A DNA stretch of 64,000 bases, taken from IMG/VR virus record IMGVR_UViG_3300021959_006017, positions 62,001-126,000 of that record. One strand, written 5' to 3'. Below, piece by piece: positions 12,605-27,060 of the stretch. The position numbers were made by a program, and so were the translations under genes. The notes under the pieces are model-generated. The model had not been told where the DNA came from and did no database searches. It saw only the letters and a list, made by a program, of their open reading frames with translations. How positions within the stretch are numbered: position 1 is the first letter of the stretch; every line of letters starts with the position of its first letter.

Positions 12605-12789
12605 TATGCTTGCTCCGAATAAATTGCTAGTCCGCCTACGATAGTTGCAAACAAACCTGCGCCTGCTACCATAAGCATCTCTCCGATAGTGTTTGCCTGA
12701 TCCATGCAAGCCCCGTCGCAGTCACCTGCTGAACCTGCCATCATCAACAAACCTGTAAAAACTAAAACTGTGCCTATTGCTGTCTTCAT
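12604..12789 (-). CDS. small two-helix membrane protein (AGDCD motif)
   Basis: Own promoter and RBS. Confidence 0.7.
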   Translation of the reverse strand: MKTAIGTVLVFTGLLMMAGSAGDCDGACMDQANTIGEMLMVAGAGLFATIVGGLAIYSEQA

Positions 12790-12857
12790 TGTCTTGCCCT
12801 CGCTTTCTAACTATACATACACTATAGCACCGAAGTGCTATAGTGTCAAGACCTTTT

Positions 12858-13163
12858 TTAATAAGCGTGAACTTTTTCTTCGACTTTGATCATCGAAGCT
12901 GGCACCTTGTAGGTGGTGTTGAAGACGCCGTTTGACATGCCACCTTGCACGACCACAGTCTTCTGGTTCACCTTTGTGACCTTCCCAACGACCTTGCCCT
13001 GACGTCCGATGAACGAAACGACATCGCCTTTGGTTACCGAACGGATGCCTTCGCGGGCCAATGCGTTCTGCTTGAGTTTGATAGCATCGTAAATCTCACG
13101 AAGCTCTTCGATATCCTGTAGAGCATAAATGGCCTCTACTGCCTTTGTTACACGATTTGACAT
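12858..13163 (-). CDS. hypothetical protein with SH3/KOW-like C-terminus
   Basis: KGDVVSF...GKVTKVNQKTVVV; start reset to MSNRV. Confidence 0.6.
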   Translation of the reverse strand: MSNRVTKAVEAIYALQDIEELREIYDAIKLKQNALAREGIRSVTKGDVVSFIGRQGKVVGKVTKVNQKTVVVQGGMSNGVFNTTYKVPASMIKVEEKVHAY

Positions 13164-13164
13164 T

Positions 13165-13401
13165 TTAATACTCCTCACCAAAGTCTGCCCATTCTTGTTC
13201 CCACGAGGGTTGACCATCGTCTTCATAGTCCTCCTCGTCTTCGTCTTCGTCGTCCATAAACCGACTGCTCAGCTCGTTGCAGTCTAGCATATCAGCAACG
13301 TCATCCGTGCTCATATACTTCAACGCCATTGTAAGCATATTCTCTGCGCTTACTACGCCGTTCTCTACTAGCTCTAATGCTTCGTCTCTTGCGTTATACA
13401 T
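13165..13401 (-). CDS. acidic hypothetical early protein
   Basis: Own promoter and RBS; ends QPSWEQEWADFGE. Confidence 0.75.
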   Translation of the reverse strand: MYNARDEALELVENGVVSAENMLTMALKYMSTDDVADMLDCNELSSRFMDDEDEDEEDYEDDGQPSWEQEWADFGEEY

Positions 13402-13453
13402 GAAGTTTGCCCTCTTCGTTGTTTCTAACTATACATACACTATAGCAAACGAT

Positions 13454-13630
13454 TTAGGATTTGTCAACCACTTTTTTCAAATATTCTGCAGAAACTGTAA
13501 AGGTCAAGCCTGTGTCGTCGCCGTCGATTGACATGATCTCAAATGAGGCGCATTGACTCTTGAGTGCGTCCTCTACTGCTTCCAACACCAGTTCCATTTG
13601 GTCTACATCTTCAAAGTATTCGGTATCCAT
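13454..13630 (-). CDS. acidic hypothetical protein
   Basis: Start reset to MDTEY, coupled to the upstream stop. Confidence 0.55.
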   Translation of the reverse strand: MDTEYFEDVDQMELVLEAVEDALKSQCASFEIMSIDGDDTGLTFTVSAEYLKKVVDKS

Positions 13631-14220
13631 TACGCATCCTCCATTTCTTCCCATTCAGCGTATTGATCACTCAAGCCGTATTCTTCGTCTATGCGTTTGA
13701 ACAGACTAGGAGCATCGTCGAGGTTGTCTTTATACTGTTCCCAAGTCTCTTGGATGCCGTCCATATGCTCTTCACCGGTCTCGCTATCCCAGAAGCCACC
13801 GAAGTCCATACCACCTTCGTGATAACTCGCTTCAATGTAGACACCGTCCATGTCTTCGCAGAATGTTTCGTATGCGGTAAGTGGTGGAGCCCATGCACTA
13901 TCGAACCAACCACTGATCGAGGCTGTGCCGTCTCCGTTGTCCGTAAACTCTAGTCCTTCTGTGGATACATCCCACTTGGTTCCCCATCGGCCCACACACC
14001 AATCATACCAATTGTCGTAGCCATCTACCACCGGCTGTTCGCCTTCGTAGTTACTGGCACCTTCTTGTGGTGTAGGTGATGTAGTTCCTTCTAGAGCTTT
14101 GGGCATAGGAACCATTGCTGATAGCAGTCCGCCATCTTCGGCTGAAGCCTCTTCCCAAAGTGTTTTGATAGTTTCAGTTGAACCCTGAATCGTGATATTG
14201 TTGTTGCACCAATTTGGCAT
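13630..14220 (-). CDS. YubB/Api92-like (DUF1281-type) ferredoxin-like domain protein
   Basis: MPNWCNN, WCVGRWGTKWD, FDSAWAPP motifs. Confidence 0.7.
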   Translation of the reverse strand: MPNWCNNNITIQGSTETIKTLWEEASAEDGGLLSAMVPMPKALEGTTSPTPQEGASNYEGEQPVVDGYDNWYDWCVGRWGTKWDVSTEGLEFTDNGDGTASISGWFDSAWAPPLTAYETFCEDMDGVYIEASYHEGGMDFGGFWDSETGEEHMDGIQETWEQYKDNLDDAPSLFKRIDEEYGLSDQYAEWEEMEDA

Positions 14221-14299
14221 ACAGCCCTCCTATTTGTTAATCGTTGCCCTTATTGTTCTTACAGTATAGCGCCGAAACGCTATACTGTCAATCTTTAAT

Positions 14300-14764
14300 T
14301 TATTCCCAGCCAATCTCTTTTAGCATTTCTGGGGTGACCTTGCTTTCAACAAAGTCGAAGATCGGAAAGCCGTTATCATCCTTCTCTCCGTGATCGTTTA
14401 CGAGCCAGTTCTGGCCATCCCATAGGTAGGCATACTCTTCCATGTCAGCGATCCAACTTGGAACATCATCGTATTCGTTGATCACAAGCTCTTCGCCACG
14501 GTCTCTGTGGTATGCGAGTGTCCAGTTGTCTGTAAGTGGAAGCTCTGGATTTTTGTAGTCTCGATCGAATGGATGCTGTTCTCCGATCTCTTCGTTTAGT
14601 GCAGAGATTGAACCTAAGCCTATCAACGCTTCAACTTTAGCATTTGAGGTATAGTTTCGACGAAGCATCTCGCCGTTGTGTGCAGGATAACCATCCCAGT
14701 GACAATATACTGAACGGATCTTACCTTCTGGAGTCTTGTATGCAATGTTTGATCTTGTAGCCAT
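14300..14764 (-). CDS. conserved-type phage hypothetical protein (MATRS...YCHWDGYP)
   Basis: Own promoter and RBS. Confidence 0.75.
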   Translation of the reverse strand: MATRSNIAYKTPEGKIRSVYCHWDGYPAHNGEMLRRNYTSNAKVEALIGLGSISALNEEIGEQHPFDRDYKNPELPLTDNWTLAYHRDRGEELVINEYDDVPSWIADMEEYAYLWDGQNWLVNDHGEKDDNGFPIFDFVESKVTPEMLKEIGWE

Positions 14765-14840
14765 TTTTGGAGCCCTCCTAGTGGCGTTGTTGTATTATGT
14801 TTATAATATAGCACAGGGTTTGATGTTTGTCAACCTCTTT

Positions 14841-15041
14841 TTATTCAAAATCCTCATCGATCACTTCAATGTTGGTGATGCTCACACCTGGGTAGGCATC
14901 GTTCTGCAAGCCTTTGAAAGCATCGTTAAAGCTCTGCTGGCTGGCTAGGAAGTTTAGGATGTCCTGCTTGTCGTAGTCCTCTGGAACTTCAAGTGTCTGA
15001 CGGATCGTTGTGACCACGTCGATGTCTACGTACTTGGTCAT
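14841..15041 (-). CDS. hypothetical protein
   Basis: Coupled ORF. Confidence 0.6.
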   Translation of the reverse strand: MTKYVDIDVVTTIRQTLEVPEDYDKQDILNFLASQQSFNDAFKGLQNDAYPGVSITNIEVIDEDFE

Positions 15042-15244
15042 TAGTATTCCTCCCCATAGTCTGCCATTTCCTGCTTTGCTGCAAAGTCTAACAAGTCCAA
15101 AGCCAACTGCTCTGCTTGCTTGCGTGTCAACTGTATGTATTGCCCAAAGTCTGTGCTAACCTGTACACAAGTGCCTTTGTCTTCACCACCGTAGTAGCGT
15201 GTTAACAATACAGCCTTGTCTCTTGTCTTTAAATCAGTAGCCAT
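15041..15244 (-). CDS. hypothetical early protein
   Basis: Own promoter and RBS. Confidence 0.7.
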   Translation of the reverse strand: MATDLKTRDKAVLLTRYYGGEDKGTCVQVSTDFGQYIQLTRKQAEQLALDLLDFAAKQEMADYGEEY

Positions 15245-15319
15245 TGTGTGTGCCCTCTATTGCTTAACTGTTATATACAGTATATCATCTCTGTGTGTGT
15301 TTGTCAACCTCTTTTTTAG

Positions 15320-15475
15320 AAAAAAACGCCCCCGTAGGATGAGGGCGGTCCTACGAGGGCTAGGTGAAGAAGAGCGTGAGGGCTTGCATCTTCTTCTGGT
15401 TGCAGCACTTGGATGAGGGCGGTCCAAGTACTACGTAAACTGTGTTGCGGAACGTGAGGGCTTATGCTCTACGCA
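15320..15475 (-). ncRNA. putative four-hairpin small RNA with GCCCUC loops
   Basis: Stems gtagga/tcctac, gaagaaga/tcttcttc, acttgga/tccaagt plus a weaker fourth stem, each enclosing gagggc on +; T-run at the minus-strand 3' end. Confidence 0.65.
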
Positions 15476-16472
15476 TCACAGTATTCTCAGCCATTGCTTC
15501 CCACTTGAGTGGAAATGCTTTGGCCAAGTCGGCGACTTTTAGTACTGTTCTTAGAGACAGTTCACGTAGTCGCTTCTTATTGATGTCAATGAAGTCGACG
15601 ATGTCGTCCTTTACTTCATCTGACATCTGATACTCATCGAGCATACCGTCTGAAACGATTTGCTTGATGCGTAACATCTTCTCGCGCTCTGTGTCGATAG
15701 TCAAATCAACATAGTGACAGCGAGATTCCAAAGCCATTAAGTGCTCTTTGATCTTGCCTTTGGCTTTGTCAAACTTTAGGTTCGTGATAAAGATCGCGGA
15801 ACCTTTGAACTCGAATGAATCCGGCACACCTTCGTTGCGCAGTTTGAATGAATCTGTGTTCCAGTGAATGCGTCTTGTCTTCTTGGAATCCAATGCAGCT
15901 TTCAGGATGTTCAGGCTAAGCTCGTCTGCGAAGATTGAGTCACAGTCATCAAACACGATAACGTTATCTTTGTCTGCATACTTGTAGAGCTTTACATACA
16001 AACCGATCGCACTCATTGCGCCTTTGACGACCTCATACTTCTTCAGCTTGCTATCGCCTGCGATATCTGCAAGCAGGTCATGCTTGCCTAGTACTTTCTC
16101 TACACCAAACGATTTACCAACACCTGGAGGTCCTGATACGATCATAGCTCGCACATCGCCCTTCTTGGTGGCTTTGGTCATCTCCTCTAGCATGTCAAAG
16201 CGATCACGCATACGGTCCATAATGTCCTGATCACTCTCTTCTCGCACTGTAGTGGCTACGGACTCGCCTACTAGTTCGTAAGCATCATTGCCTGTACACT
16301 TGATCTTAATATTGCGATCCGGAAATCCTGCGACCGCAACACCATCGACCGTAACGTAGCCACCACTTGCACCTACCTTAAACTCTTCTACAAGTGGAAA
16401 GACCATACCTGTCAGGTCTACGTCTTTGCCTCGGATCTTGTAAGTACCCTCTAAAATCTTAACTTTTTTCAT
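15462..16472 (-). CDS. AAA+ ATPase
   Basis: Walker A SGPPGVGKS, Walker B VIVFDDCD, ESRC Arg finger; start reset to MKKVK (GAGGGC RBS). Confidence 0.85.
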   Translation of the reverse strand: MKKVKILEGTYKIRGKDVDLTGMVFPLVEEFKVGASGGYVTVDGVAVAGFPDRNIKIKCTGNDAYELVGESVATTVREESDQDIMDRMRDRFDMLEEMTKATKKGDVRAMIVSGPPGVGKSFGVEKVLGKHDLLADIAGDSKLKKYEVVKGAMSAIGLYVKLYKYADKDNVIVFDDCDSIFADELSLNILKAALDSKKTRRIHWNTDSFKLRNEGVPDSFEFKGSAIFITNLKFDKAKGKIKEHLMALESRCHYVDLTIDTEREKMLRIKQIVSDGMLDEYQMSDEVKDDIVDFIDINKKRLRELSLRTVLKVADLAKAFPLKWEAMAENTVMRRA

Positions 16473-16533
16473 GTTCGCCCTCCAGCGTCTGTGTGTGTTA
16501 TTATGTATACTATACATTCGCTCTACGTAGATG

Positions 16534-16710
16534 TCAACCAAAAAGTAGAACAAATAGTAAAATAAATCCTAGGATGGTTGCAGCATATGTGAAGACATAT
16601 GTTAACGATCCTGCTACCTGCTCGCCAAACGTCACTTCAGTGTTACAGTTGTGACATTTAGTTGCAAAGAACTCTTTGTTGTGGCTCTGGCAATACGGAC
16701 ATAAACTCAT
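16534..16710 (-). CDS. Zn-ribbon plus TM small protein
   Basis: Manual translation MSLCPYC...CHNC, hydrophobic C-terminus; TGA inside a -35 box. Confidence 0.6.
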   Translation of the reverse strand: MSLCPYCQSHNKEFFATKCHNCNTEVTFGEQVAGSLTYVFTYAATILGFILLFVLLFG

Positions 16711-16719
16711 ATCAGCCTC

Positions 16720-16881
16720 CTACAGAAAAAACCAAACGATGAAAGCAAAGCCTACCAACCATGGTGCCAGCTGCCATCCAATACGCAATGCTCCTACGAA
16801 CACTGCACCTACAATACCGATTAGCAAACCTAATACGACTAGGACTGAAATGATGTCCCACATTGTTGTTAACTGATCCAT
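16720..16881 (-). CDS. small membrane protein (53 aa)
   Basis: Manual translation, two hydrophobic helices. Confidence 0.55.
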   Translation of the reverse strand: MDQLTTMWDIISVLVVLGLLIGIVGAVFVGALRIGWQLAPWLVGFAFIVWFFL

Positions 16882-17042
16882 TATCGACGCACCACTTCTA
16901 CTAGTCTACGTGCCCGGCCTGTGTAGGCACTTGCACTCACACCTGCCATCTGACAACCTTTATCCATCGCACTCGACTCTGACAGGGCCATTACGGTTCC
17001 TTGGAACTGTCCGTCATAATAAACAAAATATTGATGAAACAT
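16881..17042 (-). CDS. hypothetical protein (53 aa)
   Basis: Manual translation MFHQYFVYYDG...; own promoter. Confidence 0.55.
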   Translation of the reverse strand: MFHQYFVYYDGQFQGTVMALSESSAMDKGCQMAGVSASAYTGRARRLVEVVRR

Positions 17043-17088
17043 TTTCTTACCCTCGTTTTCTAACTGTTATATACAGTGTACGATCTCT

Positions 17089-17283
17089 TTAGCGTCTTGT
17101 CAACCGATATTTTTCTTTTAAGAAAGAAATATTTTCTTTCACGTACTCACGGAATGAATGCGGCTGAACTTGTCCGAAGCTGTGATACTCGTCTCTGTTC
17201 TCAAAGTACTTGTTCCAACAGAAGCCCGCAAAGGGCTTCTTCTTGTATGGCTTTGGATTATTAACTTCCATTACATGCTCCAA
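17089..17283 (-). CDS. hypothetical protein
   Basis: Coupled ORF. Confidence 0.6.
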   Translation of the reverse strand: MEHVMEVNNPKPYKKKPFAGFCWNKYFENRDEYHSFGQVQPHSFREYVKENISFLKEKYRLTRR

Positions 17284-17600
17284 TAGGCTTCGCTGCTGGG
17301 TGACATATAGTTAGGAGTGTTAACCCCTTCGTACCAAGTCTTTGTGTTGTCCATTAGGCTGGACTTTTTAACCTGCTTCTCAATATGTTTGTGGAAGTAG
17401 CTGGCCTCTGCAATCGCATAACGGAACAGAGCATAGTTCGGATCCGTAGGCAGTAGACCTTCTGCCTTTGCAATGCGTGTAAGACCTGCTTTCGCTGCTG
17501 CCATAGTCTTGTAGCTCTGGCGGTGGTCCGGACGGGCAACACCATTACGATCGGGCTTGCCGATAATGTAAGTGCTGCTCTGTTCGTAAATGTAAAACAT
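17271..17600 (-). CDS. hypothetical early protein (ends NTPNYMSPSSEAYWSM)
   Basis: Own promoter and RBS. Confidence 0.75.
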   Translation of the reverse strand: MFYIYEQSSTYIIGKPDRNGVARPDHRQSYKTMAAAKAGLTRIAKAEGLLPTDPNYALFRYAIAEASYFHKHIEKQVKKSSLMDNTKTWYEGVNTPNYMSPSSEAYWSM

Positions 17601-17658
17601 GGAATGCCCTCCGTTGTTTCTAACTATACTTATAGTGTATGCTCACTCAGAGCATTTG

Positions 17659-17835
17659 TCAACCGAAATCTGTAGCTCGAAGTTCGATTTCTTCTTCTAC
17701 GTCCATCCACAGTTCGTAGACTTTGCTGGTGAGTTTCTTCTTGACACTCTCCTGTAGAGGGAGCTGCATGATGAGCTCATCGACCTCGTCGAGTTTGTTG
17801 TCAAGAGTTTCAAGGATTGATTCTGTGGTTACCAT
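17659..17835 (-). CDS. acidic helical hypothetical protein (58 aa)
   Basis: Manual translation MVTTESILETLDNK...; GGAG RBS; TGA inside a -35 box. Confidence 0.6.
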   Translation of the reverse strand: MVTTESILETLDNKLDEVDELIMQLPLQESVKKKLTSKVYELWMDVEEEIELRATDFG

Positions 17836-17880
17836 TGGGGTCTCCTATTAGCGGGGCCTATTACATTATAACTTTTTGCA

Positions 17881-18048
17881 CTAGCTTTGCCATGCTAGTA
17901 CTTTGTTGTTTTTAACTGTTAGCACACGCATTTCCGTGTAGCCGTCGCGCATAGTAAAAACTGCGCTGTACACAGCCGCGCCGCCGTCTAGCATGTTAAG
18001 CATTTGCAAGTTTGTGTACTTGCCGTTTTTTACTTTTAGTGTTTGCAT
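17881..18048 (-). CDS. hypothetical early protein (55 aa, no Pro)
   Basis: Manual translation MQTLKVKNGKY...; promoter and RBS. Confidence 0.65.
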   Translation of the reverse strand: MQTLKVKNGKYTNLQMLNMLDGGAAVYSAVFTMRDGYTEMRVLTVKNNKVLAWQS

Positions 18049-18119
18049 ATAAAGCCCTCTATGCTGTTAAGTGTTAGTGTGTATAATAGCACACACTAAC
18101 ACATTTGTCAACTACTTTT

Positions 18120-18467
18120 TTAGTTACTTAAACATGCGTAGTCAAGCAAGTTAACGTTTTGCATTGCTGTGTTAGCAACACAATTTTCGTACAAGCTGCT
18201 TTCGTCGTAGTATGTAATGTTGTTTGCAAAAACTTCCATTACAGTGCTAAGTGCTACGTAGTCGTCGCAGTCTGCAAAACTTGCGTAAACTTCCGCTAGT
18301 TGTGCATAAATGTTTGCACTGTTAATAAAGTAGCTTGCACTTGTGCAGTCTGCTTCCATTAGCAGTACGTTGTTAAATGCGTTTGTTAGTACAGCGTATA
18401 CTGTATCCGCATGTACGCTGTCTACGTTTGTTGTTTGTGTTTGTGTAATAGTTTTTAGTGCTTGCAT
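18120..18467 (-). CDS. hypothetical early protein (no Pro)
   Basis: Promoter and RBS. Confidence 0.7.
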   Translation of the reverse strand: MQALKTITQTQTTNVDSVHADTVYAVLTNAFNNVLLMEADCTSASYFINSANIYAQLAEVYASFADCDDYVALSTVMEVFANNITYYDESSLYENCVANTAMQNVNLLDYACLSN

Positions 18468-18537
18468 AACTGCCCTCCGTATGCTTTAGTGTATGTGTAC
18501 ATAATAGCACACATACACACAGTTGTCAAGTGTTTTT

Positions 18538-18783
18538 TTATATGCTGTTTATTAAACTTGTAGCAATTTGCTTTGTGCTTTTGTTTTTGCTGTACAAGTT
18601 GTACAGTGCAGGAAGTAGTTTGTACTGTTGCAGCACTTGTGCGCTTACGTTGCGCTTTACTGCTTGTACTGAGTTTGCACTTACGTTTTGTGCTTTTGTT
18701 TTACTGCAATGCTTAAACATTGTGTTGCTTGTGCTGCAATAAGTTAAAAACACATTACGTGCAAGTTGTTTTGTAGTTAACAT
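18538..18783 (-). CDS. basic hypothetical early protein
   Basis: Promoter and RBS. Confidence 0.65.
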   Translation of the reverse strand: MLTTKQLARNVFLTYCSTSNTMFKHCSKTKAQNVSANSVQAVKRNVSAQVLQQYKLLPALYNLYSKNKSTKQIATSLINSI

Positions 18784-18872
18784 ACGTAGCCCTCGTTTTT
18801 GTTAAACTGTACATACAGTATAACACAAGTTGCACACAATGCAAGCGAAAAATGCACTGTGTGCAAACTTTT

Positions 18873-19142
18873 TTAAACTAGCGGCACTAATATGTCTTTT
18901 ACACTGTCTATAATATTATGTGCGCAGTTGTCAGTAGCAAAGCCCTCCTCCGCTGCAAAGTCAATACTGCTGCTACACATAATAGTGTCTGTAAGCATAT
19001 TAATATTATATTGCGTAAACACTTGTAGTAGCTGCTGTGCTGTTTGCACAGTTGTTGCGACAACAACATTATTTACATGCACAACAATGCATGCGTTTTC
19101 AGCAGTTAAAAATACGTAGTTGTTTGTTTTTGTAGTTTGCAT
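18873..19142 (-). CDS. hypothetical early protein, paralog A (SSxDFAxEEGF motif)
   Basis: Aligns by eye with 19256-19486. Confidence 0.75.
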   Translation of the reverse strand: MQTTKTNNYVFLTAENACIVVHVNNVVVATTVQTAQQLLQVFTQYNINMLTDTIMCSSSIDFAAEEGFATDNCAHNIIDSVKDILVPLV

Positions 19143-19255
19143 ATTAAAGCCCTTATGCTGTTTACGTTATGTATACACTATAGCACACACAGCAGCAACT
19201 GTCAAGCGAAAAATGCACTGTGCGCAAACTTTTTTTAAACGAGACGAAAAGGACG

Positions 19256-19486
19256 CTACAACAGTTGCAGTGCGTCCTCTATTAATGCATGCGCAGCATC
19301 ATCGCTGCTAAAGCCTTCTTCACTTGCAAAGTCTACGTCACTGCTGTGCATTAGCCTGTCTGCTAGTGTAACGTTGTGCTTGCGTAGCAGTGCTGCTAAG
19401 TCTGCTGCACTATTAGCCCAGCCTACTTGCTGTTGTTCAATGCTTACGCTGATGCCCGCTTGTTCTGCGTTAAAAAATACAAACAT
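19256..19486 (-). CDS. hypothetical early protein, paralog B (SSxDFAxEEGF motif)
   Basis: Aligns by eye with 18873-19142. Confidence 0.75.
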   Translation of the reverse strand: MFVFFNAEQAGISVSIEQQQVGWANSAADLAALLRKHNVTLADRLMHSSDVDFASEEGFSSDDAAHALIEDALQLL

Positions 19487-19579
19487 GTTAGCCCTCTTGC
19501 TTTGTTAACTTATACATACACTATACTACACACACTAGCAGTTGTCAACTAAAAAATGCTAGTGTGTGCAAGTTTTTTA

Positions 19580-19843
19580 TTAGCCGTCGTACTTAACGCC
19601 TACCAAACGCAAGTAGCGTCCGTTGTTTGTATTGTGTACTCGCTCACAGCCAGTTACAATCTTAAGCCAAGTGCATTCGCCTTCTGTAAACTTGTCTCCA
19701 AGTATTGCGTAGCACAAGTTGCGTCTGTCTGCAACATCCTCTTTGTTCTTTTGCACAACGTTCGTCCAAGTGCGCCACACACCTGTGTTTTTGCCTTTAA
19801 TCATTGCGTTTAAAATGCTGCGTGTTTGTTTTGTGTTAAGCAT
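19580..19843 (-). CDS. hypothetical early protein
   Basis: Start reset to MLNTKQ (GAGGG RBS). Confidence 0.65.
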   Translation of the reverse strand: MLNTKQTRSILNAMIKGKNTGVWRTWTNVVQKNKEDVADRRNLCYAILGDKFTEGECTWLKIVTGCERVHNTNNGRYLRLVGVKYDG

Positions 19844-20005
19844 GTTTCCCTCATTGCTTGTTACGTTATACATTTAATATAACACAGTTGCACATAAATG
19901 CAAGTGCAACTGTGTATAGTTTAGCTATACTTTAGTATAGCAGCTCTCATAGCAGCGGGGCCAGCTGTAGTGTAGTACTACAGCACCCAGTTGTCAAGTG
20001 TTTTT

Positions 20006-20149
20006 TTAATAATTTTCTGCATCTGCCTCTAAGCAAGTTCCATCTTCGCCTAGCCAAAAGTATTTGTCAAACGCTTTAACAACAACACCTTCAATGTAGT
20101 TGCCTTCTTCCCATTCGCGTTCTTCTGTAGTAATAACTTCAACTTGCAT
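20006..20149 (-). CDS. hypothetical early protein (47 aa)
   Basis: Manual translation MQVEVITTEEREWEEG...; promoter and RBS. Confidence 0.6.
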   Translation of the reverse strand: MQVEVITTEEREWEEGNYIEGVVVKAFDKYFWLGEDGTCLEADAENY

Positions 20150-20243
20150 ATTTGCCCTCATGCTTGTTACGTTTTAGTATGTGTATACTATAGCACAAGC
20201 AGCGCACTTTGTCAAGTACTAAATGCGCTGCTTGCAAATTAAT

Positions 20244-20705
20244 TTATGCGTCCTCAAGCACTATGTTATGTGCTGTAAGCATTTCCTCCGCTATTGCATT
20301 AGCGTCATAGCTCGCACGTCCCACATCCTGCATGCCCCACTCACTAGTGCATACGTCCTCCGCTGCTGCTGTGCTAAAGCCGTGCTGCTGTAGTATGCTG
20401 TGCAGCGTGTCGTCAAAACAATGTTCCCAGTAAAACTGTCCCATTGTTTCCGTGTTGTTGTTAGTGTCACTAGTGTCACGCATTAGCATGCTAGTGTTGT
20501 GTACGTAGTTGCTGTCGTCTTCCGCAGCCCAGTTAACAGCTAAGTCCCCGTAGCAGTCTGCATCCGCATACAGCGTAATGCTTTCCACTTTGCGTCCATT
20601 AACTTGCAAGTTTTGCTGTGCTAAGTTAATTTCCAGCACTACGCTGTTGTCTGCGCTTTCAAGTGTTGTTACTGCTTTAACTTTAGTGTTGTTTACGTTT
20701 TGCAT
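20244..20705 (-). CDS. acidic hypothetical early protein (153 aa, no Pro)
   Basis: Promoter and RBS; SEWGMQ motif. Confidence 0.75.
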   Translation of the reverse strand: MQNVNNTKVKAVTTLESADNSVVLEINLAQQNLQVNGRKVESITLYADADCYGDLAVNWAAEDDSNYVHNTSMLMRDTSDTNNNTETMGQFYWEHCFDDTLHSILQQHGFSTAAAEDVCTSEWGMQDVGRASYDANAIAEEMLTAHNIVLEDA

Positions 20706-20773
20706 TTAAAGCCCTCCAAATGCTTGTTTAAGTATACGTACACTATAGCACAAGTGTACGTATTTGTCAAGTA

Positions 20774-20953
20774 TTATTTTACGTTACAGTATGCTTTGTA
20801 ACTGTTAAACATTTTTTCAATGTTAGCTGCTTTAGTGCAGTTGCCTTGCCTGCTGTCTGCTACTAAACGCATACAGTTTTTTTGCAACTGTGCAAAAGTT
20901 GTTACTTGTTGTTTGTAGTACGCAGGCTTTGCGTTTTGTGCGTTATATGCCAT
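20774..20953 (-). CDS. hypothetical early protein (59 aa)
   Basis: Manual translation MAYNAQNAK...; own promoter. Confidence 0.6.
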   Translation of the reverse strand: MAYNAQNAKPAYYKQQVTTFAQLQKNCMRLVADSRQGNCTKAANIEKMFNSYKAYCNVK

Positions 20954-21033
20954 TTTGTAGTGCCCCCTACTGTTTAACTGTGCATACAGTATAACACAAT
21001 ATGCACAGTTGTCAAGTGTTTTTTTAAATTATT

Positions 21034-21246
21034 TTAGTAGCCCCAGTTGTTGTCTACTACGTCATGCACTTCAATACGTGCGTTCTCGTCTAGTTTAAAA
21101 AACGCATTGTCGTATTCTGCGTAGTCTGCGTTAATAGCTGCTAGTTGCTCTACAGCGTCTTCGTAGCTTGCACACACTGCTGCATTTTCGTATGCATATT
21201 CGTCGTCGCCTGTGCCTTGCAGTTGTAGTATGTTTACTTGTAGCAT
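21034..21246 (-). CDS. acidic hypothetical early protein
   Basis: Start reset to MLQVNIL (GAGGGC RBS). Confidence 0.7.
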   Translation of the reverse strand: MLQVNILQLQGTGDDEYAYENAAVCASYEDAVEQLAAINADYAEYDNAFFKLDENARIEVHDVVDNNWGY

Positions 21247-21337
21247 AGTTTGCCCTCTTTGCTTTATTAACTGTACACACAGTATAACCTCACTTGTGCG
21301 TTCTGTCAAGTTCTTTTTGTTCGCCTGTTCTTTCCGT

Positions 21338-21631
21338 TCACGCAGCACATGCGGCATCCACTCGCTGCCCAAGTGTCTCTACCAGTTCAATCCTCTCATC
21401 GTAGTCTAGTGTAGTCTCAAACGGAACATAACCAACATCACCTAGTCGGCCGCCTAGAGTGTCCACATCAATGGAGATAGTATACCCCTCATACAACATG
21501 TAACCGCCTTGAGGTGATCGTATTTGACCTTTAGCCACTACTACACCTTCTATGTAGTAGTCCTTACCGCCTCTAAAGTCATACGCACGGATACGATCAC
21601 CTACACCTGCTAGATTCTGATATTTCAACAT
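21338..21631 (-). CDS. hypothetical early protein (SH3-like)
   Basis: GDRIRAYDF...YIEGVV; own promoter. Confidence 0.7.
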   Translation of the reverse strand: MLKYQNLAGVGDRIRAYDFRGGKDYYIEGVVVAKGQIRSPQGGYMLYEGYTISIDVDTLGGRLGDVGYVPFETTLDYDERIELVETLGQRVDAACAA

Positions 21632-21699
21632 GTGATTTCCCTCTTGGGTTTGCCCTAACTGTTATATACAGTATATGATCTAATGTAGTACTTGTCAAC

Positions 21700-22410
21700 C
21701 ATTATTTTACAAAAGAACAAAAAGATTTCACTTGGCGTGTTGAACACACAAACTGATCAGAGAGGCGAGAAACCAGAAATCAAATACACTATACACTTCA
21801 AAGACTTATACAGTATAGTAGAACCTAAGTCCACACTAGTGTGGTCCTACCGTAGTAGTAGTGTGAACTTAGTAGTGTAAGCCATTGATCTCTATAGTGT
21901 TAGTAGTGTAGACTATAGTAGTGTAGTAGGGAGAGGCCTTTAGGCCGAATGGTTGAACTTCTTGTGCTAAGTCATTGATCTTTAAGGAGAATAACCACCA
22001 TTTACGAGGGGTTTTAGGGCTATGCTACATGCATAGCAGCGGGGCCTTTGTGGCTAAATGTGGCTTTTCTTCATAGTTTTCAAAGGTTTATATAGGATTT
22101 TTGAACCGTTGCTCGAGGTGACGAGAGGCATAGTTCAAATACTTTTACCAATACTATCAATACGTTAGCTACACTACTTACACTACTACTATAGCCTCTC
22201 TTACTAGTGTAGTAGTAGCCTTAGTGTAGATCAGGATCTCTTCCAAAGCCTGGCTTTACAGTGCTTACTTCTCGTTCTACTATAGTGAAACTTGGATCAG
22301 TCTGAGCCACATACTCGTGTGCTTCTTCATAACTGCTAAGAGTTTCTACTACAGTGCCCTCTGAGTTGATTACATCATATAGTTTAATCATCAAGTATTT
22401 ATTTGGTGTG
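21700..22410. repeat. non-coding region with TAGTAGTGT and AAG(T/C)CATTGATCT repeats; candidate origin or genome terminus
   Basis: tagtagtgt x4 within 21854-21925, inverted forms near 22170-22220, aagccattgatct 21880 and aagtcattgatct 21969. Confidence 0.55.
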
Positions 22411-22561
22411 TGCTTACGTGTTAGCAGCGGGGCCTATTGATGTTCTAGGTATTAGATTTTTAGGATTGGTTGCATAACGCTCTGCTATGTGTTTGTTTGA
22501 AGTTCTCAGTGCGAGATATCCCTTGGGTGTGTACACACTATAGTAGTTGCGATTGTTGATC

Positions 22562-22807
22562 TTATGTGCTTGGATCTTCAACATCTGGTGGGGTTGCATC
22601 CGTTATTTTGAATGGGAATGTAGTCGGGGGAGCTGTGTCTTCGAATGTTCTGTGTACTTCGATGCCATAGGCTTGTGCGCAGGCATCCAGTACGACCCAC
22701 AGTGCTTCGCGGGTGTCATCATCAAACTGTTGTTCCACAGCACTTGCTGCTACATTAAGCACAGTCTCCAGTAGTTCTTCAGGTGTAAACTCAACACTCT
22801 TGGTCAT
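22562..22807 (-). CDS. hypothetical protein
   Basis: Start reset to MTKSVEF. Confidence 0.55.
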   Translation of the reverse strand: MTKSVEFTPEELLETVLNVAASAVEQQFDDDTREALWVVLDACAQAYGIEVHRTFEDTAPPTTFPFKITDATPPDVEDPST

Positions 22808-23081
22808 TCCATAGTACCTCATCCCAGTCCCAGCAGTCATCATAACTCACTGTGAATCGCTGTTGGCTAGCAGTGTCTATCACTTCTAGCATACGTTTGT
22901 TTGTGTCACGACGTGCAATAACTCCTAAACCTTCATACACACCCGGAGTACCTGGATGTGCTTGACCCACTGCAAGATTGTGTGCAGTCACGGGTAGGTT
23001 GTCTTTGAGGAAGGTTACAGTTCTAAAACGTGTTGCCCAACTGGTTCCTTGGGGCAGTTCATCTAGTGTAAGCTGTTTCAT
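22791..23081 (-). CDS. hypothetical protein
   Basis: Start reset to MKQLTL; TAAATA 5 nt upstream. Confidence 0.6.
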   Translation of the reverse strand: MKQLTLDELPQGTSWATRFRTVTFLKDNLPVTAHNLAVGQAHPGTPGVYEGLGVIARRDTNKRMLEVIDTASQQRFTVSYDDCWDWDEVLWNDQEC

Positions 23082-23145
23082 ACTAGTATTTATGAGTGTG
23101 CGGCTTGCGATAAATATTTTTGACTTCGGAAAAAGGAGACTTCCC

Positions 23146-23364
23146 ATGAGTACACTAAGAAACATATCGCTCAACTTGGAGTTGGGCCAAACCATTCTAG
23201 TAGGCAAAAACAGAGAACCCGCAGAAATAACCAAGATCGAATATCATCCTAACTCAGGAGAAATAAGTCTCAATACCACAAGAGGACCACGCAAAGCTCT
23301 TACGTTTTGTTTGGCAGCAGGCGAAGATGATGAGTTCGCAAACCCCGCAGATCGCTATCGCTAG
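23146..23364 (+). CDS. hypothetical protein
   Basis: AGGAG RBS, late motif upstream. Confidence 0.65.
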   Translation: MSTLRNISLNLELGQTILVGKNREPAEITKIEYHPNSGEISLNTTRGPRKALTFCLAAGEDDEFANPADRYR

Positions 23365-23378
23365 TGCTAAATATATAC

Positions 23379-23627
23379 ATGAGAGTAGATGAAGTACTAA
23401 CAGACGAACAAGATATCCTAGACTGGCAGGCCAGTCGAAGCCTTTGTACCAGCAGCAAGCCCGACTCGGCGCTAGGATCCAGCGCACTCGCTTCATGCAA
23501 GAGCCAAGGCTACCGACGTAGGGATGGAAACAAGTCGCACAAAGTAGGCCCTAACAAACGTGTTAAGGTTGGCGGCAAAAAGATCAAGGGTAAGAAATAT
23601 GGCGGACCGCTTCCAGACTGGAGTTAG
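23379..23627 (+). CDS. small basic protein, possible head-internal protein
   Basis: MRVDEV N-terminus, Lys/Gly-rich C-terminus. Confidence 0.6.
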   Translation: MRVDEVLTDEQDILDWQASRSLCTSSKPDSALGSSALASCKSQGYRRRDGNKSHKVGPNKRVKVGGKKIKGKKYGGPLPDWS

Positions 23628-24132
23628 AAAGGGCGACCTATTAGTTGCCACACCCAAGCTGAACAGTTTGCCTTGGAGACGCTCAGTTGTACTTGTTACA
23701 GAAAGCTCTCCCAGGACTGTTATGGGTACTATACTAAACCGTCCTACTATGATGACCACCGAAGATGTTACTGACAGAGCACTAAGGCGCACACAGGTAT
23801 ACATGGGTGGTCCTATATCAACGCAGGCACTTTTCATGCTGCATACCTCAGATTTTACTAGCTCTAACACACTCACAGTGGACAAGCGTTGGGCGATCTC
23901 AAGTGATGATTTTATGTTTGACAAACTGGCAGCAGGCAACGAACCTGCTTGGTATAGATTTTATATGGGTGCTGCAGGATGGCATCCACAGCAGTTAGAA
24001 CATGAAATAGCCCAGGGAGCATGGTTGAGATTAGAAGACCCAAGCTGGGAGTGTGTAACAGGTGATGCAACAGATCAGTGGCAGGCCTGCATAGATACTC
24101 TTAGCCAGAACATGTTCTCAGACTATATCTAA
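23599..24132 (+). CDS. YqgE/AlgH (DUF179) family protein
   Basis: LLVATP, RSVVLV, GTILNRP, YMGGP, YMGAAGWHPQQLEHEI..W. Confidence 0.85.
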   Translation: MADRFQTGVRKGDLLVATPKLNSLPWRRSVVLVTESSPRTVMGTILNRPTMMTTEDVTDRALRRTQVYMGGPISTQALFMLHTSDFTSSNTLTVDKRWAISSDDFMFDKLAAGNEPAWYRFYMGAAGWHPQQLEHEIAQGAWLRLEDPSWECVTGDATDQWQACIDTLSQNMFSDYI

Positions 24133-24160
24133 CTGTTAAGTATACAACCGGAGAACAACT

Positions 24161-24502
24161 ATGTTTAAGAAACTAGCCTTATCTATCGTTGCCGGGCTAG
24201 TTTGCGCAACCAACATAGCCCTAGCAGCAGACCCTTTACCTCTAGCAACTGTACAATGGTGTGAACCAGAGAGCGGCAAGATGTTTGATATGGTACAGAA
24301 CAAGTATGGTGAAATACCATTCATACAAGGAAGTGCAAGTGTGCAAACCACGCAAGGTCCTTGGCTTAAAGGTGACTTTTATATGCTGATCAACCCTGAA
24401 AGCAAGACGTTCAGCATAATACTTGTAGACCCACAGACAGGCCTAGAATGCCTATGGCTAGCAGGAGGCGATGTTGTACCTAGCGTAGGAGATGGCATAT
24501 GA
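24161..24502 (+). CDS. exported hypothetical protein
   Basis: Signal peptide, two Cys. Confidence 0.65.
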   Translation: MFKKLALSIVAGLVCATNIALAADPLPLATVQWCEPESGKMFDMVQNKYGEIPFIQGSASVQTTQGPWLKGDFYMLINPESKTFSIILVDPQTGLECLWLAGGDVVPSVGDGI

Positions 24503-24744
24503 AATGGTTTATATATGTGATTATGATGGGCATGTACTCAGACGGTACGCAAGACACTTATCTCTATACTGAGCCTACACTACCTACACTAGAAGAATGC
24601 CAAGCCTACGTGTACAACAACAGCAGTGTGATTCGTATGGACATGATGACGGAGTTTGATGGCAAACAAGTAGAACGTGTGTTCTGCATAGAAGAAGAAA
24701 AATTCAAACAGTTTTTAGAACAGTCACAAGGAACAGAAGCATGA
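24499..24744 (+). CDS. small exported hypothetical protein
   Basis: Hydrophobic N-terminus, EECQ...FCI; resembles the next ORF. Confidence 0.6.
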   Translation: MKWFIYVIMMGMYSDGTQDTYLYTEPTLPTLEECQAYVYNNSSVIRMDMMTEFDGKQVERVFCIEEEKFKQFLEQSQGTEA

Positions 24745-24929
24745 AATGGATGTTGGTTGTTATAGGTATTATGAATGGTACTCCCGAAGTGTCAAACGAA
24801 GGCGTGTATGAAACTATGTCACACTGCTTCTTTGCAAGAGAAGCAATCATCTGGGATCTATTTATGAACCCAGATGGACAACCACCCACAAACTTCCAAG
24901 TGGTGTGTATACCTACAGATAAATATTAA
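24741..24929 (+). CDS. small exported hypothetical protein
   Basis: MKW N-terminus, SHC...VCIP. Confidence 0.6.
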   Translation: MKWMLVVIGIMNGTPEVSNEGVYETMSHCFFAREAIIWDLFMNPDGQPPTNFQVVCIPTDKY

Positions 24930-25466: not shown

Positions 25467-25874
25467 CCACCCTATCTTTTTACCTAACTTAGTACGCTTT
25501 TCGTGTTCTGCAACTGTACCTGGAAATCTCCAAGCCCAGATGGCTACCAGCAACATGAAACCACCGCTCCAGGCGACTGCTTTGATATTGCCAGTGGTGA
25601 ACCAAAGGAATGCTAACGAGGACGACATTACTATCACCATCGCATACTTGCCTTTGGTAGGAAATACTCTTTTCTGTACCCAGTTAGTTAGGAATGGGCC
25701 AAAGTATTTGTGATTGTATAACCAATCGTGCATCTTCTTGTTGCTCTTTGCAAAACAATATGCTGCAAACACAAGGAAGATACTAAATGGAATACCCGGA
25801 ACGACTACGCCGATGTATGCCATGCCTAAAGATAGGAAGCCAAGTCCCATCCACACGTATTTTTTAATATTCAT
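25458..25874 (-). CDS. YbaN (DUF454) family membrane protein
   Basis: GVVVPGIP...[23 protein letters not shown]. Confidence 0.85.
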
Positions 25875-27060
25875 TGAATACCTTTCTAAGTGCCTCTACT
25901 AGGTCACTCATCATCGCATCAGTATGTAGAGGTGTAGGAGCGATGCGTAGCCTCTCTGCACCAACATCCACAGTAGGGTAGTTAATGGGTTGGATGTATA
26001 TCCCATATTCGTCTAACAACCGATCACTCATAGCCTTGCACCGCTTCGCTTCGCGAACCATAACTGGTACAATATGAGTGCTGGCTGCATCGTGAACTTC
26101 TATACCTGCTTCGGTTAACATTCTAGTTAGCGTAGCAGCACGTTCTTGATGTTGTATCCTAAGTTCGTTATGATCCTTAAGATACTTGATAGATGCTAGG
26201 GCACCAGCACAAATAACCGGGCTCATGCTGGTAGTGAATATAAATCCACTGGCTACGCTGCGGATTGCGTCTATGACCGTTCCGTCACCGGCAATGTAGC
26301 CACCCTGTACACCATATGCCTTGCCCAGCGTTCCGTTGATTATATCAACACGGCCTTCCCCTATCTTTTCGCAGTAACCTGCGCCAGTTTCACCGTACAA
26401 TCCTACAGCATGTACTTCGTCTATATAGGTCATCGCACCGTAGCGATTAGCAAGGTCGCAGACTTGAGAAATAGGGCTTACGTCACCATCCATGCTATAC
26501 ACAGATTCAAAGACTATGCAGGGTTTAAGTCCTAGGTTAGTAACTTCCTGTAGTTTCTCTTCCAGGCTGCTCATATCATTGTGAAGCCATATACGTTTCT
26601 CTGCGCCACTGTGTCTAATACCCTGGATTAGTGAAGCATGATTCTTTGAATCTGATAGAAAACATATATCAGGTATGATACGTTTAAGTGCAACCAGTGT
26701 CCATTCATTAGCGACATAAGCACTTGTATACAGTAGAGCAGAAGGTTTTGTATGCAGTCGTGCAAGCTCTAACTCTAGTGCAACGTGATAATGGCTAGTG
26801 CCGCCAATATTTCTTGTACCCCCGCTTCCACTTCCTGTTTGGTCGAGGGCTGTGTGCATGGCATCAATAACAACTTTGTTTTGACCCATGCCTAGATAGT
26901 CGTTGCTACACCAGTTGACAATGTTCTTGATGGCATATGGTCCATACCATATACTCTTAGGAAAGTCACCACGCTCACGAAGAATATCGTTAAACACACG
27001 GTACTTGCCTGTTTGTTTAAGATCATCAATAACTTGTTCAAAGGGAGTTTTGTCTATCAT
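25864..27060 (-). CDS. hemA: 5-aminolevulinate synthase (PLP-dependent, C4 pathway)
   Basis: [65 protein letters not shown]. Confidence 0.95.

Follow-up and report, generated by a model that had tools for sequence, protein, structure and literature searches.

The locus and its early genes

The window, the whole 64-kb stretch of DNA analysed here, belongs to a contig, no shorter than 237 kb, from a jumbo phage distantly related to PA5oct; the source phage is uncultured, marine and giant. Within an early region of 15 kb, which carries no fewer than 22 consensus sigma70 promoters, lies a block of ten small minus-strand genes in which TC and CC (together YC) are nearly absent from the sense strand (Table 1). 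Nearly every gene is preceded by a near-consensus TTGACA-N17-TATAnT promoter, which supports the proposal of a preliminary description that the block genes are early genes with the host sigma70 RNA polymerase as reader. Most genes driven by the same promoters are not YC-free.

Table 1. Positions of the YC-free genes and of the elements around them.
Feature	Position	Strand	Remarks
YC-free block	17856..21422	-	sense strand nearly without TC/CC, + strand nearly without GA/GG (GR)
Sigma70-type promoter (P21309)	21281..21309	-	11/12 match
YC-free gene 1	21034..21246	-	~70 aa from ATG 3' of P21309; RBS agagggc
Sigma70-type promoter	20988..21015	-	
YC-free gene 2	20774..20953	-	59 aa; YC 1/36 C
Sigma70-type promoter	20742..20770	-	
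YC-free gene 3	20244..20705	-	153 aa; YC 0/98 C; no Pro
Sigma70-type promoter	20187..20215	-	
YC-free gene 4	20006..20161	-	51 aa
Sigma70-type promoter	19969..19997	-	10/12 match
YC-free gene 5	19580..19873	-	97 aa; YC 0/55; 90-nt 5'UTR bearing GGCCCCGCT
Sigma70-type promoter	19520..19548	-	
YC-free gene 6	19256..19486	-	76 aa; paralog of gene 7
Cluster of 5 tolerated YC	19241..19253	-	directly 3' of gene 6 stop codon, ahead of hairpin
Terminator-like hairpin + TTTTTCGCTT tail	19214..19226	-	3' of gene 6
Sigma70-type promoter	19177..19205	-	
YC-free gene 7	18873..19142	-	89 aa; paralog of gene 6
Hairpin + tail	18853..18865	-	3' of gene 7; near-identical to 19214..19226
Weaker promoter of gene 8	18817..18845	-	TTGCAT ... 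TATACT; by eye
Gene 8	18538..18783	-	81 aa; nearly clean on both strands: YC 3/52, GR 0/37
Sigma70-type promoter	18501..18529	-	
YC-free gene 9	18120..18467	-	115 aa; YC 0/74
Sigma70-type promoter	18083..18111	-	12-nt inverted repeat around -10 element
YC-free gene 10	17881..18048	-	55 aa; YC 0/36
Sigma70-type promoter of isolated gene	15279..15307	-	directly 3' of terminator hairpin 15327-15347
Isolated (11th) YC-free gene	15041..15244	-	67 aa; YC 0/35; outside block

None of the YC-free proteins has a recognisable function. The family of gene 3 is abundant and marine; its fold, predicted with confidence (pLDDT 85.5), is novel and matches nothing in the PDB. The product of gene 7, whose family comprises 285 metagenomic clusters, is predicted to be a folded alpha/beta protein (pLDDT 86.9), and the protein of gene 8 lacks Asp, Glu and Gly altogether. 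For gene 1, a longer ORF up to 21357/21372 is possible; its homolog in a related locus (L036:1183) is YC-free too.

On the + strand between 17861 and 21420, the limits first given for the block, GA occurs 10 times against about 160 expected and GG 8 times against about 130 (odds 0.06 each; binomial log10P about -143), a near-absence stronger than originally claimed. Drawn exactly, the zone is slightly wider, with GR at 18 of 679 G and longest clean runs of 966, 756 and 506 nt, and the eleventh YC-free gene lies outside it. In 500-nt windows, GR/G is 0.00-0.09 inside the block and 0.3-0.6 in all the rest of the 64 kb. Of the 18 exceptions, 7 fall within coding DNA (2,568 nt) and 11 outside it (999 nt); those at 19208 and 18847 are due to the tails of the two hairpins. 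As described, the left edge adjoins GGCCCCGCT (- strand, 17850-17858), while the upstream edge lies within the gene at 21338-21631. The flanks, said to be rich in GATC, are ordinary (251 observed, 233 expected), and the opposite strand, said to keep GA and GG, does so only in part: it is itself partly depleted (TC 0.55, CC 0.67), and at 18527-19099 both strands are clean. An assembly artefact is rejected, since no fewer than 24 contigs from JGI and ENA, each assembled independently, carry the block.

The depletion amounts to a near-absence of YC from the sense strand of the ten genes, and the avoidance is strand-specific, costly and acts at the level of nucleotides. It costs amino acids, as had been noted (3 Pro in the 846 aa of the ten ORFs), it pushes the Ser codons of the YC-free genes to AGY (320, against 7 TCN), and it crosses codon boundaries, where Y|C is found 15 times instead of the 437 expected.

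Distribution of the trait

YC avoidance is a property of single genes. In the window, YC/C is at most 0.06 in 11 genes and 0.20 in the next lowest, and the same bimodality holds for 1,370 ORFs of 46 loci, of which 59 fall below 0.03 and the bulk between 0.2 and 0.6. Altogether, 69 unique YC-free genes (19.6 kb) contain 63 YC, where about 1,400 are expected. Each gene carries the trait on its own sense strand, inverted genes included: gene 9 has inverted homologs in two loci (L015, L042), and in both it is the homolog's own sense strand that is YC-free. The isolated gene is an especially sharp case, as its clean run (15037-15319) takes in the promoter and ends exactly at the stop codon, and the overlapping 3' neighbour on the same transcript is normal (YC/C 0.43); homologs of the isolated gene in other loci are not YC-free. 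YC density per 100 nt in YC-free genes is 0.3 for the 5'UTR and 0.4 for the CDS, against 2.4 for the untranscribed promoter spacer and 1.9 directly 3' of the stop; in the latter two regions the constraint is about six times weaker. It is therefore maximal between transcription start and stop codon and relaxed beyond, even if promoter spacers are still about threefold depleted.

The trait is kept in at least 15 related metagenomic contigs despite protein divergence. C content is 18.1% in YC-free genes and 20.6% in normal ones, with less T and an enrichment of purine-C (GAC 72%, GC odds 2.0). We ascribe the trait to selection and not to mutation, because C is nearly kept, T does not rise and purine-C goes up, and because YC-free families keep it at 40-87% amino-acid identity, with no Pro in 115 of 120 metagenomic homologs of gene 3 and 109 of 120 of gene 7; sequence comparison thus indicates a purge maintained by selection in many relatives. 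The strand-biased C-to-T mutation once considered is rejected on the same grounds of composition.

The surviving sites are biased in context. Remaining Pro codons are CCG 9, CCT 11, CCA 2 and CCC 1, compared with 13/35/35/16% in normal genes, and surviving YC become rarer toward the 3' end (12, 24, 15, 9 and 5 by quintile). GA and GG are avoided in the message as well, more weakly and most strongly at the start codon: GR/G over the first 12 nt is 0.19, compared with 0.54 for normal genes, and in 61 of 73 genes the base after ATG is C or T. One gene of a related locus (L029:13030-13548) has neither YC nor GR in 172 codons and is clean on both strands.

Proposed escape from a YC-directed attack on RNA

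What, then, could purge these messages of YC? The purge probably lets them escape a putative factor acting at YC sites, and our leading, if tentative, explanation is that this factor is a YC-directed enzyme that attacks RNA and needs a single hit. The block and the isolated gene form an early set transcribed by host RNA polymerase, and selection has stripped every UC and CC step from their messages. Most likely, these messages have to remain whole and fit for translation at a time when an enzyme attacking single-stranded RNA at YC is active in the freshly infected cell. Such an enzyme might be an endoribonuclease or an RNA-modifying enzyme, and might serve the host as an abortive-infection toxin or the phage itself as a weapon for host shutoff. 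If a single hit kills a message, only messages with essentially no YC would survive; the products would act as 'first responders', plausibly counter-defence or takeover proteins. The UC/CC-specific RNase listed among the earlier alternatives comes close to this explanation.

The all-or-none pattern, its tie to each gene's own sense strand, its maximum between transcription start and stop codon and its maintenance by selection all speak for this explanation. A purge to zero despite the loss of Pro fits a hazard that is fatal at a single site, and the biased context of the surviving sites in Pro codons suggests an enzyme reading a third base. GR avoidance in the message, being strongest around the start codon, suggests a link with translation and so with RNA. 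It is established that mRNAs without the recognition motif (ACA-less) resist the MazF interferase. Neither an RNase nor an RNA-modifying enzyme with YC specificity is known, and the search of the window revealed none; its nucleases are SNase-like (54756-55241), HNH and PD-(D/E)XK. Nor did the literature yield a published precedent for YC-free early genes. Dinucleotide-specific attack on mRNA does have a precedent in the defence-system effector CmdT, which ADP-ribosylates GA in single-stranded RNA (PMC11618068).

Several observations sit uneasily with an RNA-only hazard, which explains neither the genes clean on both strands (gene 8 and its counterpart in the related locus) nor the depletion of promoter spacers; a simple cutting model, moreover, does not predict that surviving YC become rarer toward the 3' end. 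Since YC is present in every other gene of the phage, such a hazard could only be short-lived or would need to be neutralised. YC on the mRNA and GR on the template strand are, by sequence alone, one and the same signal.

Alternative explanations

Evasion of Rho is an unlikely competitor: a YC-free nascent RNA would offer no Rho loading site, and short early genes would be read to their end though poorly translated at the onset of infection. Phages need anti-Rho devices (lambda N, P4 Psu), the YC-free genes are read by the host sigma70 polymerase, and the avoidance is sense-specific, spans 5'UTR and CDS and relaxes past the stop codon. The primary RNA-binding cleft of each Rho subunit binds 5'-YC (PMC12360218, citing Bogden 1999, Skordalakes and Berger 2003), making YC the exact ligand of this site, although the Rho studied may not be the host's. 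Rho requires several YC within a stretch of about 70-80 nt; evaders should tolerate isolated YC and Pro, yet genes reach 0/98 and 0/118. YC close to the 3' end ought to do no harm, but it is in this part that survivors are fewest. Purine-C is raised, not lowered, and normal early genes, with G (23.2%) already above C (20.6%), are poor Rho substrates as they stand. Rho also leaves unexplained the avoidance on the opposite strand and the limitation of the trait to a minority of genes that share the same promoters.

A guanine hazard on the template DNA appears more improbable still. Here, GR would be modified or damaged by the phage (7-deazaguanine) or by a host enzyme, for example a guanine ADP-ribosyltransferase, the lesion would stop host RNA polymerase, and genes read from incoming DNA would keep a GR-free template. 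Known DpdA enzymes target GA, or GA and GGC, which resemble the avoided template steps (PMC7544227, PMC10484667). A lesion on both strands with the stronger effect on the template would account for the hierarchy of a clean template and a partly, sometimes fully, clean sense strand, and the single-hit logic fits, as does the extent of the constraint, which begins with transcription and ends with the stop codon. The version favoured in the preliminary description, 7-deazaguanine at GA and GG with an unmodified template, is nevertheless not supported. No TGT/DpdA, FolE or QueC/D/E domain was found in the 43 ORFs of at least 150 aa in the window, a search covering 64 kb of a genome that has about 170 kb more, and tblastn with CAjan DpdA, FolE, QueD, QueC and QueE against the window and 49 related loci gave a single chance-level QueE match (L012, E 0.62). 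The dPreQ0 phage CAjan, the model for the GA/GGC motif, has no comparable block and no GR-free stretch above 112 nt, and its modification is described as running throughout the genome, with transcription never mentioned (PMC7544227); for DarT1 of E. coli, a defined motif is lacking (PMC11543638). GA and GG are retained on the template of most early genes that share these promoters, and GR-containing template follows within 5-26 nt of YC-free genes without a terminator, where stalled polymerases would queue back. Nor does anything indicate that this DNA enters first, the block lying in mid-contig and the trait following gene orientation in inverted copies. The start-codon peak of GR avoidance in the message has no rationale at the level of DNA.

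Attack on the exposed non-template strand at TC/CC, as selection or as a mutational footprint, is very improbable. Candidates would be cytosine deaminases of the APOBEC/DddA type, a T4 endonuclease IV-like dC-specific nuclease and a DarT2-like enzyme: ssDNA deaminases classically act in a TC/CC context, TC is the preferred step of T4 EndoIV, and the DarT2 motif TNTC includes TC. The non-template strand is, moreover, the one exposed in transcription. Yet a C-to-T signature is absent (less T, C almost unchanged and compensation by purine-C), DNA damage would hurt the whole genome whereas the trait ends at stop codons within a transcription unit, equally transcribed neighbours are normal, and the bimodality among identically promoted genes is unexplained.

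It is hardly credible that the first-injected DNA was cleared of sites for restriction, Dam or Dcm, although the first-step-transfer region of T5 is a precedent and the lack of GATC, CCWGG, GGCC and TCGA in the block agrees with it. Of the 16 four-base palindromes, only 4 include GA, GG, TC or CC, and on the other strand non-palindromic sites persist. Restriction is lethal anywhere in a genome so that a gene-limited trait does not protect, YC-free genes are interspersed with normal ones, and the trait obeys a sense-strand rule, following gene orientation in inverted copies.

Comparison with known systems

CpG and UpA suppression in eukaryotic virus RNA (ZAP, RNase L) and restriction-site avoidance in phages are driven by a host factor that reads sequence. 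These are genome-wide statistical depletions, whereas the avoidance described here concerns particular genes, is strand-specific and almost absolute. Rho utilisation sites share with it the YC class, the nascent RNA and the sense specificity (PMC12360218), but Rho binding needs several YC sites, and the near-absolute purge, clean 3' ends and retained C are not what Rho evasion predicts. DpdA acts at GA/GGC in CAjan (PMC7544227) and iggy (PMC10484667), which resembles the complement of the avoided steps; known DpdA phages, however, are modified genome-wide on both strands, and CAjan has no motif-free genes, while no pathway genes were found here. CmdTAC, which targets T4-like phages, offers an antiviral effector with dinucleotide specificity on mRNA (PMC11618068). 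A subset of the genes described here lacks GA/GG in the message, most strongly at the start codon, reminiscent of CmdT's GA target, but the main avoided steps are UC and CC, most YC-free messages keep GA, and sequence avoidance by phages was not reported for CmdT (PMC11618068). There is a likeness, too, to ACA-less mRNAs and MazF, where the absence of a short motif from the sense strand in all frames confers all-or-none immunity to a toxin that cuts RNA and needs one hit. The ACA-less messages are an engineered case with a 3-nt motif; the present one, with no cognate enzyme known, is natural, spans two dinucleotides (a quarter of all C contexts) and is paid for with the loss of proline.

Results

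A block of early genes lacks TC and CC on the sense strand

On the plus strand between 17861 and 21420, GA occurs 10 times and GG 8 times, against 160 and 130 expected from base composition (odds 0.06 each), and GC (1.97) and GT (1.52) are in excess. The genes of this block lie on the minus strand, so the lack of GA and GG (together GR, on the template) equals a lack of TC and CC (YC) on the sense strand. The clean zone extends exactly from 17856 to 21422, with unbroken runs of 966, 756 and 506 nt; GR/G in 500-nt windows is 0.00-0.09 within it and 0.3-0.6 in all the rest of the 64 kb, and the deficit corresponds to a binomial log10 P of about -143. The ten small ORFs of the block hold three prolines among 846 amino acids. 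The upstream edge falls within the gene at 21338-21631, and an eleventh YC-free gene (15041-15244) stands apart from the block. Across the window, 11 genes have a YC/C of at most 0.06; the next lowest gene has 0.20.

The preliminary description had the numbers of GA, GG and proline right (10, 8 and 3). The flanks that it called rich in GATC are ordinary in this respect, with 251 sites observed against 233 expected, and the opposite strand, which it took to retain GA and GG, does so only in part: it is partly depleted, and both strands are clean at 18527-19099. GGCCCCGCT recurs in four identical copies, every one on the minus strand, which is the sense strand of the early region; two copies are responsible for YC exceptions at or inside the block.

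The early region of a marine jumbo phage

The contig (IMG/VR 3300021959_006017; 236,751 bp) carries the block in its interior, at about 80-83 kb, and comes from an uncultured marine jumbo phage. A T5-like first-step-transfer region would be expected at whichever genome end enters first. The window covers positions 62001-126000 of this contig and has genes for a DnaB-like helicase, a primase, a ribonucleotide reductase and three tRNAs, together with marine-type auxiliary genes for a heme oxygenase, a bilin reductase, Hsp20 and an IMPDH/GMP reductase-family protein. At the DNA level no cultured phage showed similarity, whether the search was set for near or for distant matches. The nearest cultured relative is the jumbo Pseudomonas phage PA5oct (helicase 50% identical, AAA protein 49%); neither its syntenic 40 kb nor the first 50 kb of Vibrio phage 2.275.O contains a YC-free block, and one YC-free family had no match by tblastn in cultured phages or in GTDB genomes. 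One block protein has an identical copy on a 343-kb contig.

The early region spans 15 kb of the minus strand and has at least 22 near-consensus sigma70 promoters, about one per small gene, of the form GGTTGACA-N17-TATAnT, often with TG (TGnTATAnT) and an A-rich upstream part, and ribosome-binding sites of the GAGGGC type. Only some genes of this region are YC-free, so being early and read by the host polymerase is insufficient alone to explain the trait. The isolated gene, 2.6 kb outside the block, is clean (15037-15319) from just past a terminator hairpin, through its promoter and exactly to its stop codon; the gene overlapping and next after it has normal YC.

In promoters of YC-free genes, an inverted repeat often brackets the -10 element, with the spacer or -35 region pairing with +1 to +15. 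Among these promoters 28% have a perfect repeat of at least 6 nt at the -10, compared with 5% for normal early promoters and 4% for shuffled sequences, and such promoters also occur in related loci. Downstream of each of two paralogs in the block lies a short hairpin; the two hairpins are almost the same, and the TTTTTCGCTT tail of each runs into the -35 element of the next promoter.

Table. Coordinates of features in the window
Feature	Position	Strand	Remark
Early region	~9.7-24.8 kb (9700-24800)	minus	
tRNA cluster Arg-TCT, Leu-TAA, Met-CAT	12151-12401		inside early region
Terminator hairpin	15327-15347		
GGCCCCGCT, exact copies	17850-17858, 19954-19962, 22038-22046, 22426-22434	minus	
Inverted-repeat promoters	18083-18111, 18501-18529, 20742-20770, 20988-21015		12-nt repeat in the first
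Paralog and its hairpin	18873-19142; 18853-18865		
Paralog and its hairpin	19256-19486; 19214-19226		
Carbamoyltransferase	3098-4117		between primase and helicase genes
AlgH-like protein	23560-24132	opposite strand	inside early region
Class I/II aminotransferase	25864-27060		
UDP-glucose dehydrogenase-like protein	32110-32868		
536-aa protein	42708-44318		Mtd N-terminal and pectate-lyase-like domains
Staphylococcal-nuclease-like protein	54756-55241		among cell-wall hydrolase genes
IMPDH/GMP reductase-family protein, Hsp20, heme oxygenase, ferredoxin-dependent bilin reductase	59476-62760		auxiliary metabolic genes

Several other genes of the window deserve mention. The carbamoyltransferase, the aminotransferase and the UDP-glucose dehydrogenase-like protein could have roles in sugar, surface or DNA modification chemistry. 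The 536-aa protein is likely a receptor-binding protein and possibly the target of a diversity-generating retroelement, and the staphylococcal-nuclease-like protein is a possible DNA- or RNA-degrading enzyme.

The constraint acts on nucleotides of the transcribed, translated span

Avoidance of YC acts at the nucleotide level. Across the YC-free genes Phe is encoded by TTC in 6 of 253 cases and Ile by ATC in 4 of 307; CTC, GTC, ACC and GCC are nearly missing, and serine is written AGY 320 times and TCN 7 times, much as first described. C that follows a purine is retained or increased (GAC 72%, AAC 63%). The avoidance also crosses codon boundaries, another point on which the preliminary description holds: 15 junctional Y|C steps are observed against 437 expected. 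On the sense strand YC is all but absent in every frame, at codon junctions and in the 5'UTR, as would be expected of a motif-less mRNA resistant to an mRNA-attacking toxin, and its spread among genes is all-or-none. The constraint is strongest over the transcribed, translated span, with 0.3 YC per 100 nt in the 5'UTR and 0.4 in the coding sequence, compared with 2.4 in the promoter spacer, 1.9 in the first 30 nt past the stop codon and 7.2 in normal coding sequences. Both pyrimidines are slightly lower than in normal genes (C 18.1 vs 20.6%, T 23.5 vs 25.0%), and GC and AC compensate for the lost YC. The surviving proline codons are CCG 9, CCT 11, CCA 2 and CCC 1, where normal use is 13/35/35/16%, and the surviving YC steps thin toward the 3' end (12, 24, 15, 9 and 5 by quintile).

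GA and GG on the sense strand are avoided as well, more weakly (odds 0.67 and 0.69). This second avoidance peaks at the start codon: in 61 of 73 YC-free genes from the window and related loci the base after ATG is C or T, compared with about 40% of normal genes, and in 44 of the 73 it is C. Many unrelated YC-free families begin with ATGCAAAAC (Met-Gln-Asn/Thr), which suggests a shared start cassette. In a few genes the second avoidance is total, namely 18538-18783 in the window and, in the related metagenomic loci L029 and L042, L029:13030-13548 and two genes of L042. As at 18527-19099, GA, GG, TC and CC are missing on both strands at L042:6430-6672 and 6927-7178. The proteins of such genes contain no Pro, Asp, Glu or Gly; L029:13030-13548 runs for 172 codons without any of these residues and without YC or GR.

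The trait is conserved and follows the gene

Related loci were collected through the neighbouring AAA-ATPase gene (45 loci, 67-84% identical) and through a block protein (four). In at least 15 distinct contigs, a block whose template strand is free of GR sits upstream of the AAA gene. YC/C is bimodal over 1,370 ORFs, with 59 ORFs below 0.03 and the bulk at 0.2-0.6, and 69 unique YC-free genes (19.6 kb) contain 63 YC where normal density predicts about 1,400. The presence of the block on at least 24 contigs from independent assemblies rules out an assembly artefact. YC-free families keep the trait as they diverge to 40-87% amino-acid identity, and proline is missing from 109 of 120 metagenomic homologs of one block protein and from 115 of 120 of another. 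The state of a gene can nevertheless change: in one family, four phages have a YC-free copy, two an intermediate one and two a normal one with 1-4 prolines, and homologs of the isolated gene in other phages are not YC-free (10-23 YC each).

A two-gene module in two related loci (L015:6382-6777 and L042:6005-6672) is homologous to the window gene 18120-18467 and probably to 18538-18783, and is inverted relative to its neighbours and to window 18120-18783. In both loci it is clean on its own sense strand, indicating that the trait follows the gene and not the DNA strand.

The ORFs encode genuine proteins: AlphaFold models of two block families (genes 18873-19142 and 20244-20705) are confident, with pLDDT 86.9 and 85.5. 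Both families are common in ocean metagenomes, with 285 and 530 protein clusters. No Pfam or PHROGs match emerged for the block proteins, and no PDB match for the two modelled families.

Discussion

Three mechanisms that act gene by gene and sense-specifically are left: attack on mRNA, evasion of Rho and a lesion on the template. The leading candidate, which we favour tentatively and at less than an even chance, is that an endoribonuclease or RNA-modifying enzyme attacks mRNA at YC, a single hit being enough, and that messages without YC would be spared. It fits best because the distribution is all-or-none, YC is purged to zero at the cost of proline, the survivors are biased by context and the secondary avoidance peaks at the start codon. 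Precedents in principle exist. ACA-less messages survive MazF. During T-even infection CmdT modifies GA in single-stranded mRNA (PMC11618068). We know of no YC-specific RNA-attacking enzyme, and a cognate one was not recognised in the window. The model also leaves unexplained the genes clean on both strands, for which none of the explanations so far accounts, and the phage's other genes require the hazard to be transient.

Rather unlikely, but attractive, is the idea that YC-free nascent RNA escapes Rho, whose primary site binds 5'-YC (PMC12360218); the nascent RNA is indeed without YC from its 5' end to the end of the gene. However, the graded, multi-site pattern that such evasion should leave is not seen, as YC counts reach 0 where isolated or 3'-terminal YC should be tolerated. 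Moreover, the 3' ends are clean and hold the fewest survivors, C after a purine is raised where evasion would lower C overall, and normal early genes already have more G than C.

A lesion at G-purine steps of the template strand would explain the two-strand hierarchy, yet we consider it improbable. YC-free genes are followed at once by template that contains GR, and polymerases halted there would pile up back into these genes; no supporting genes were found in the window or the related loci. The same argument bears on 7-deazaguanine at GA/GG, the leading idea of the preliminary description, for which no support emerged; GR is, furthermore, retained on the templates of genes with the same promoters. 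No TGT domain of the kind that DpdA carries was detected in the 43 window ORFs of at least 150 aa, and DpdA of coliphage CAjan, in which GA/GGC modification was mapped, had no tblastn match in the window and 49 related loci, with about 170 kb of the genome lying outside this search. Domain and tblastn searches of the same sequences for FolE and QueC/D/E gave nothing beyond a chance-level QueE in one related locus, L012 (E 0.62). Nor does CAjan show the motif-free early templates that the idea presupposes for known DpdA phages: its longest GR-free run is 98-112 nt and its minimum GR/G in 300-nt windows 0.15. The CAjan paper describes a genome-wide modification and never mentions transcription (PMC7544227). 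In this phage the idea is weakened but not dead. The remaining weight is shared by minor rivals and something not yet imagined.

Other readings were rejected. Hazards to DNA integrity (restriction, nicking, ssDNA deaminases, DarT2-like TNTC enzymes) would harm the whole genome and are excluded because the trait ends at stop codons and skips equally transcribed neighbours. Avoidance of restriction sites or palindromes would be symmetric and genome-wide, whereas the trait is sense-specific, confined to single genes and follows inverted genes; only 4 of 16 four-base palindromes would go. CRISPR PAM avoidance and a Type III restriction strand bias would likewise need a genome-wide effect. The C-to-T footprint of an APOBEC- or DddA-like deaminase should combine C loss with T gain, and T is lower instead. 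Codon-junction avoidance rules out a codon or tRNA cause; selection for unstructured mRNA is contradicted by YC-free messages that fold at least as expected (z -2.3 vs -1.1); UV (6-4) photoproducts at TC/CC would count on the template, yet the clean strand is the sense strand; and DarT1 was rejected for want of a defined motif, E. coli DarT1 having none (PMC11543638).

What strikes us is that selection has purged one whole amino acid from dozens of conserved phage proteins to delete two dinucleotides on one strand, which points to a strong sequence-reading force in the first minutes of infection. It is conceivable, although we lean slightly against it, that the YC-free genes bear the mark of an enzyme not yet described, common across marine bacteria or these phages, whose targets are pyrimidine-cytosine steps of RNA or else the complementary G-purine steps of the DNA template; the proteins without proline would then be a dedicated counter-defence or takeover set made for expression under fire. 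If so, gene-level dinucleotide avoidance could reveal immune effectors together with the phage genes that answer them. Naming the force would reveal either a so far undescribed form of phage-host conflict or a novel route of escape from Rho, and the signature, being trivial to compute, could serve to pick out early "first-responder" genes among uncultured phages.

The YC purge is not explained by any described system, and literature searches for precedents returned no description of dinucleotide-free phage genes; if the factor is a new enzyme, the finding would be categorically new. Motif avoidance as a principle is familiar from restriction sites, from CpG and UpA suppression in eukaryotic viruses and from engineered ACA-less genes. 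In contrast to these, the avoidance described here is natural, confined to single genes, strand-specific and near-absolute, and it costs an amino acid.
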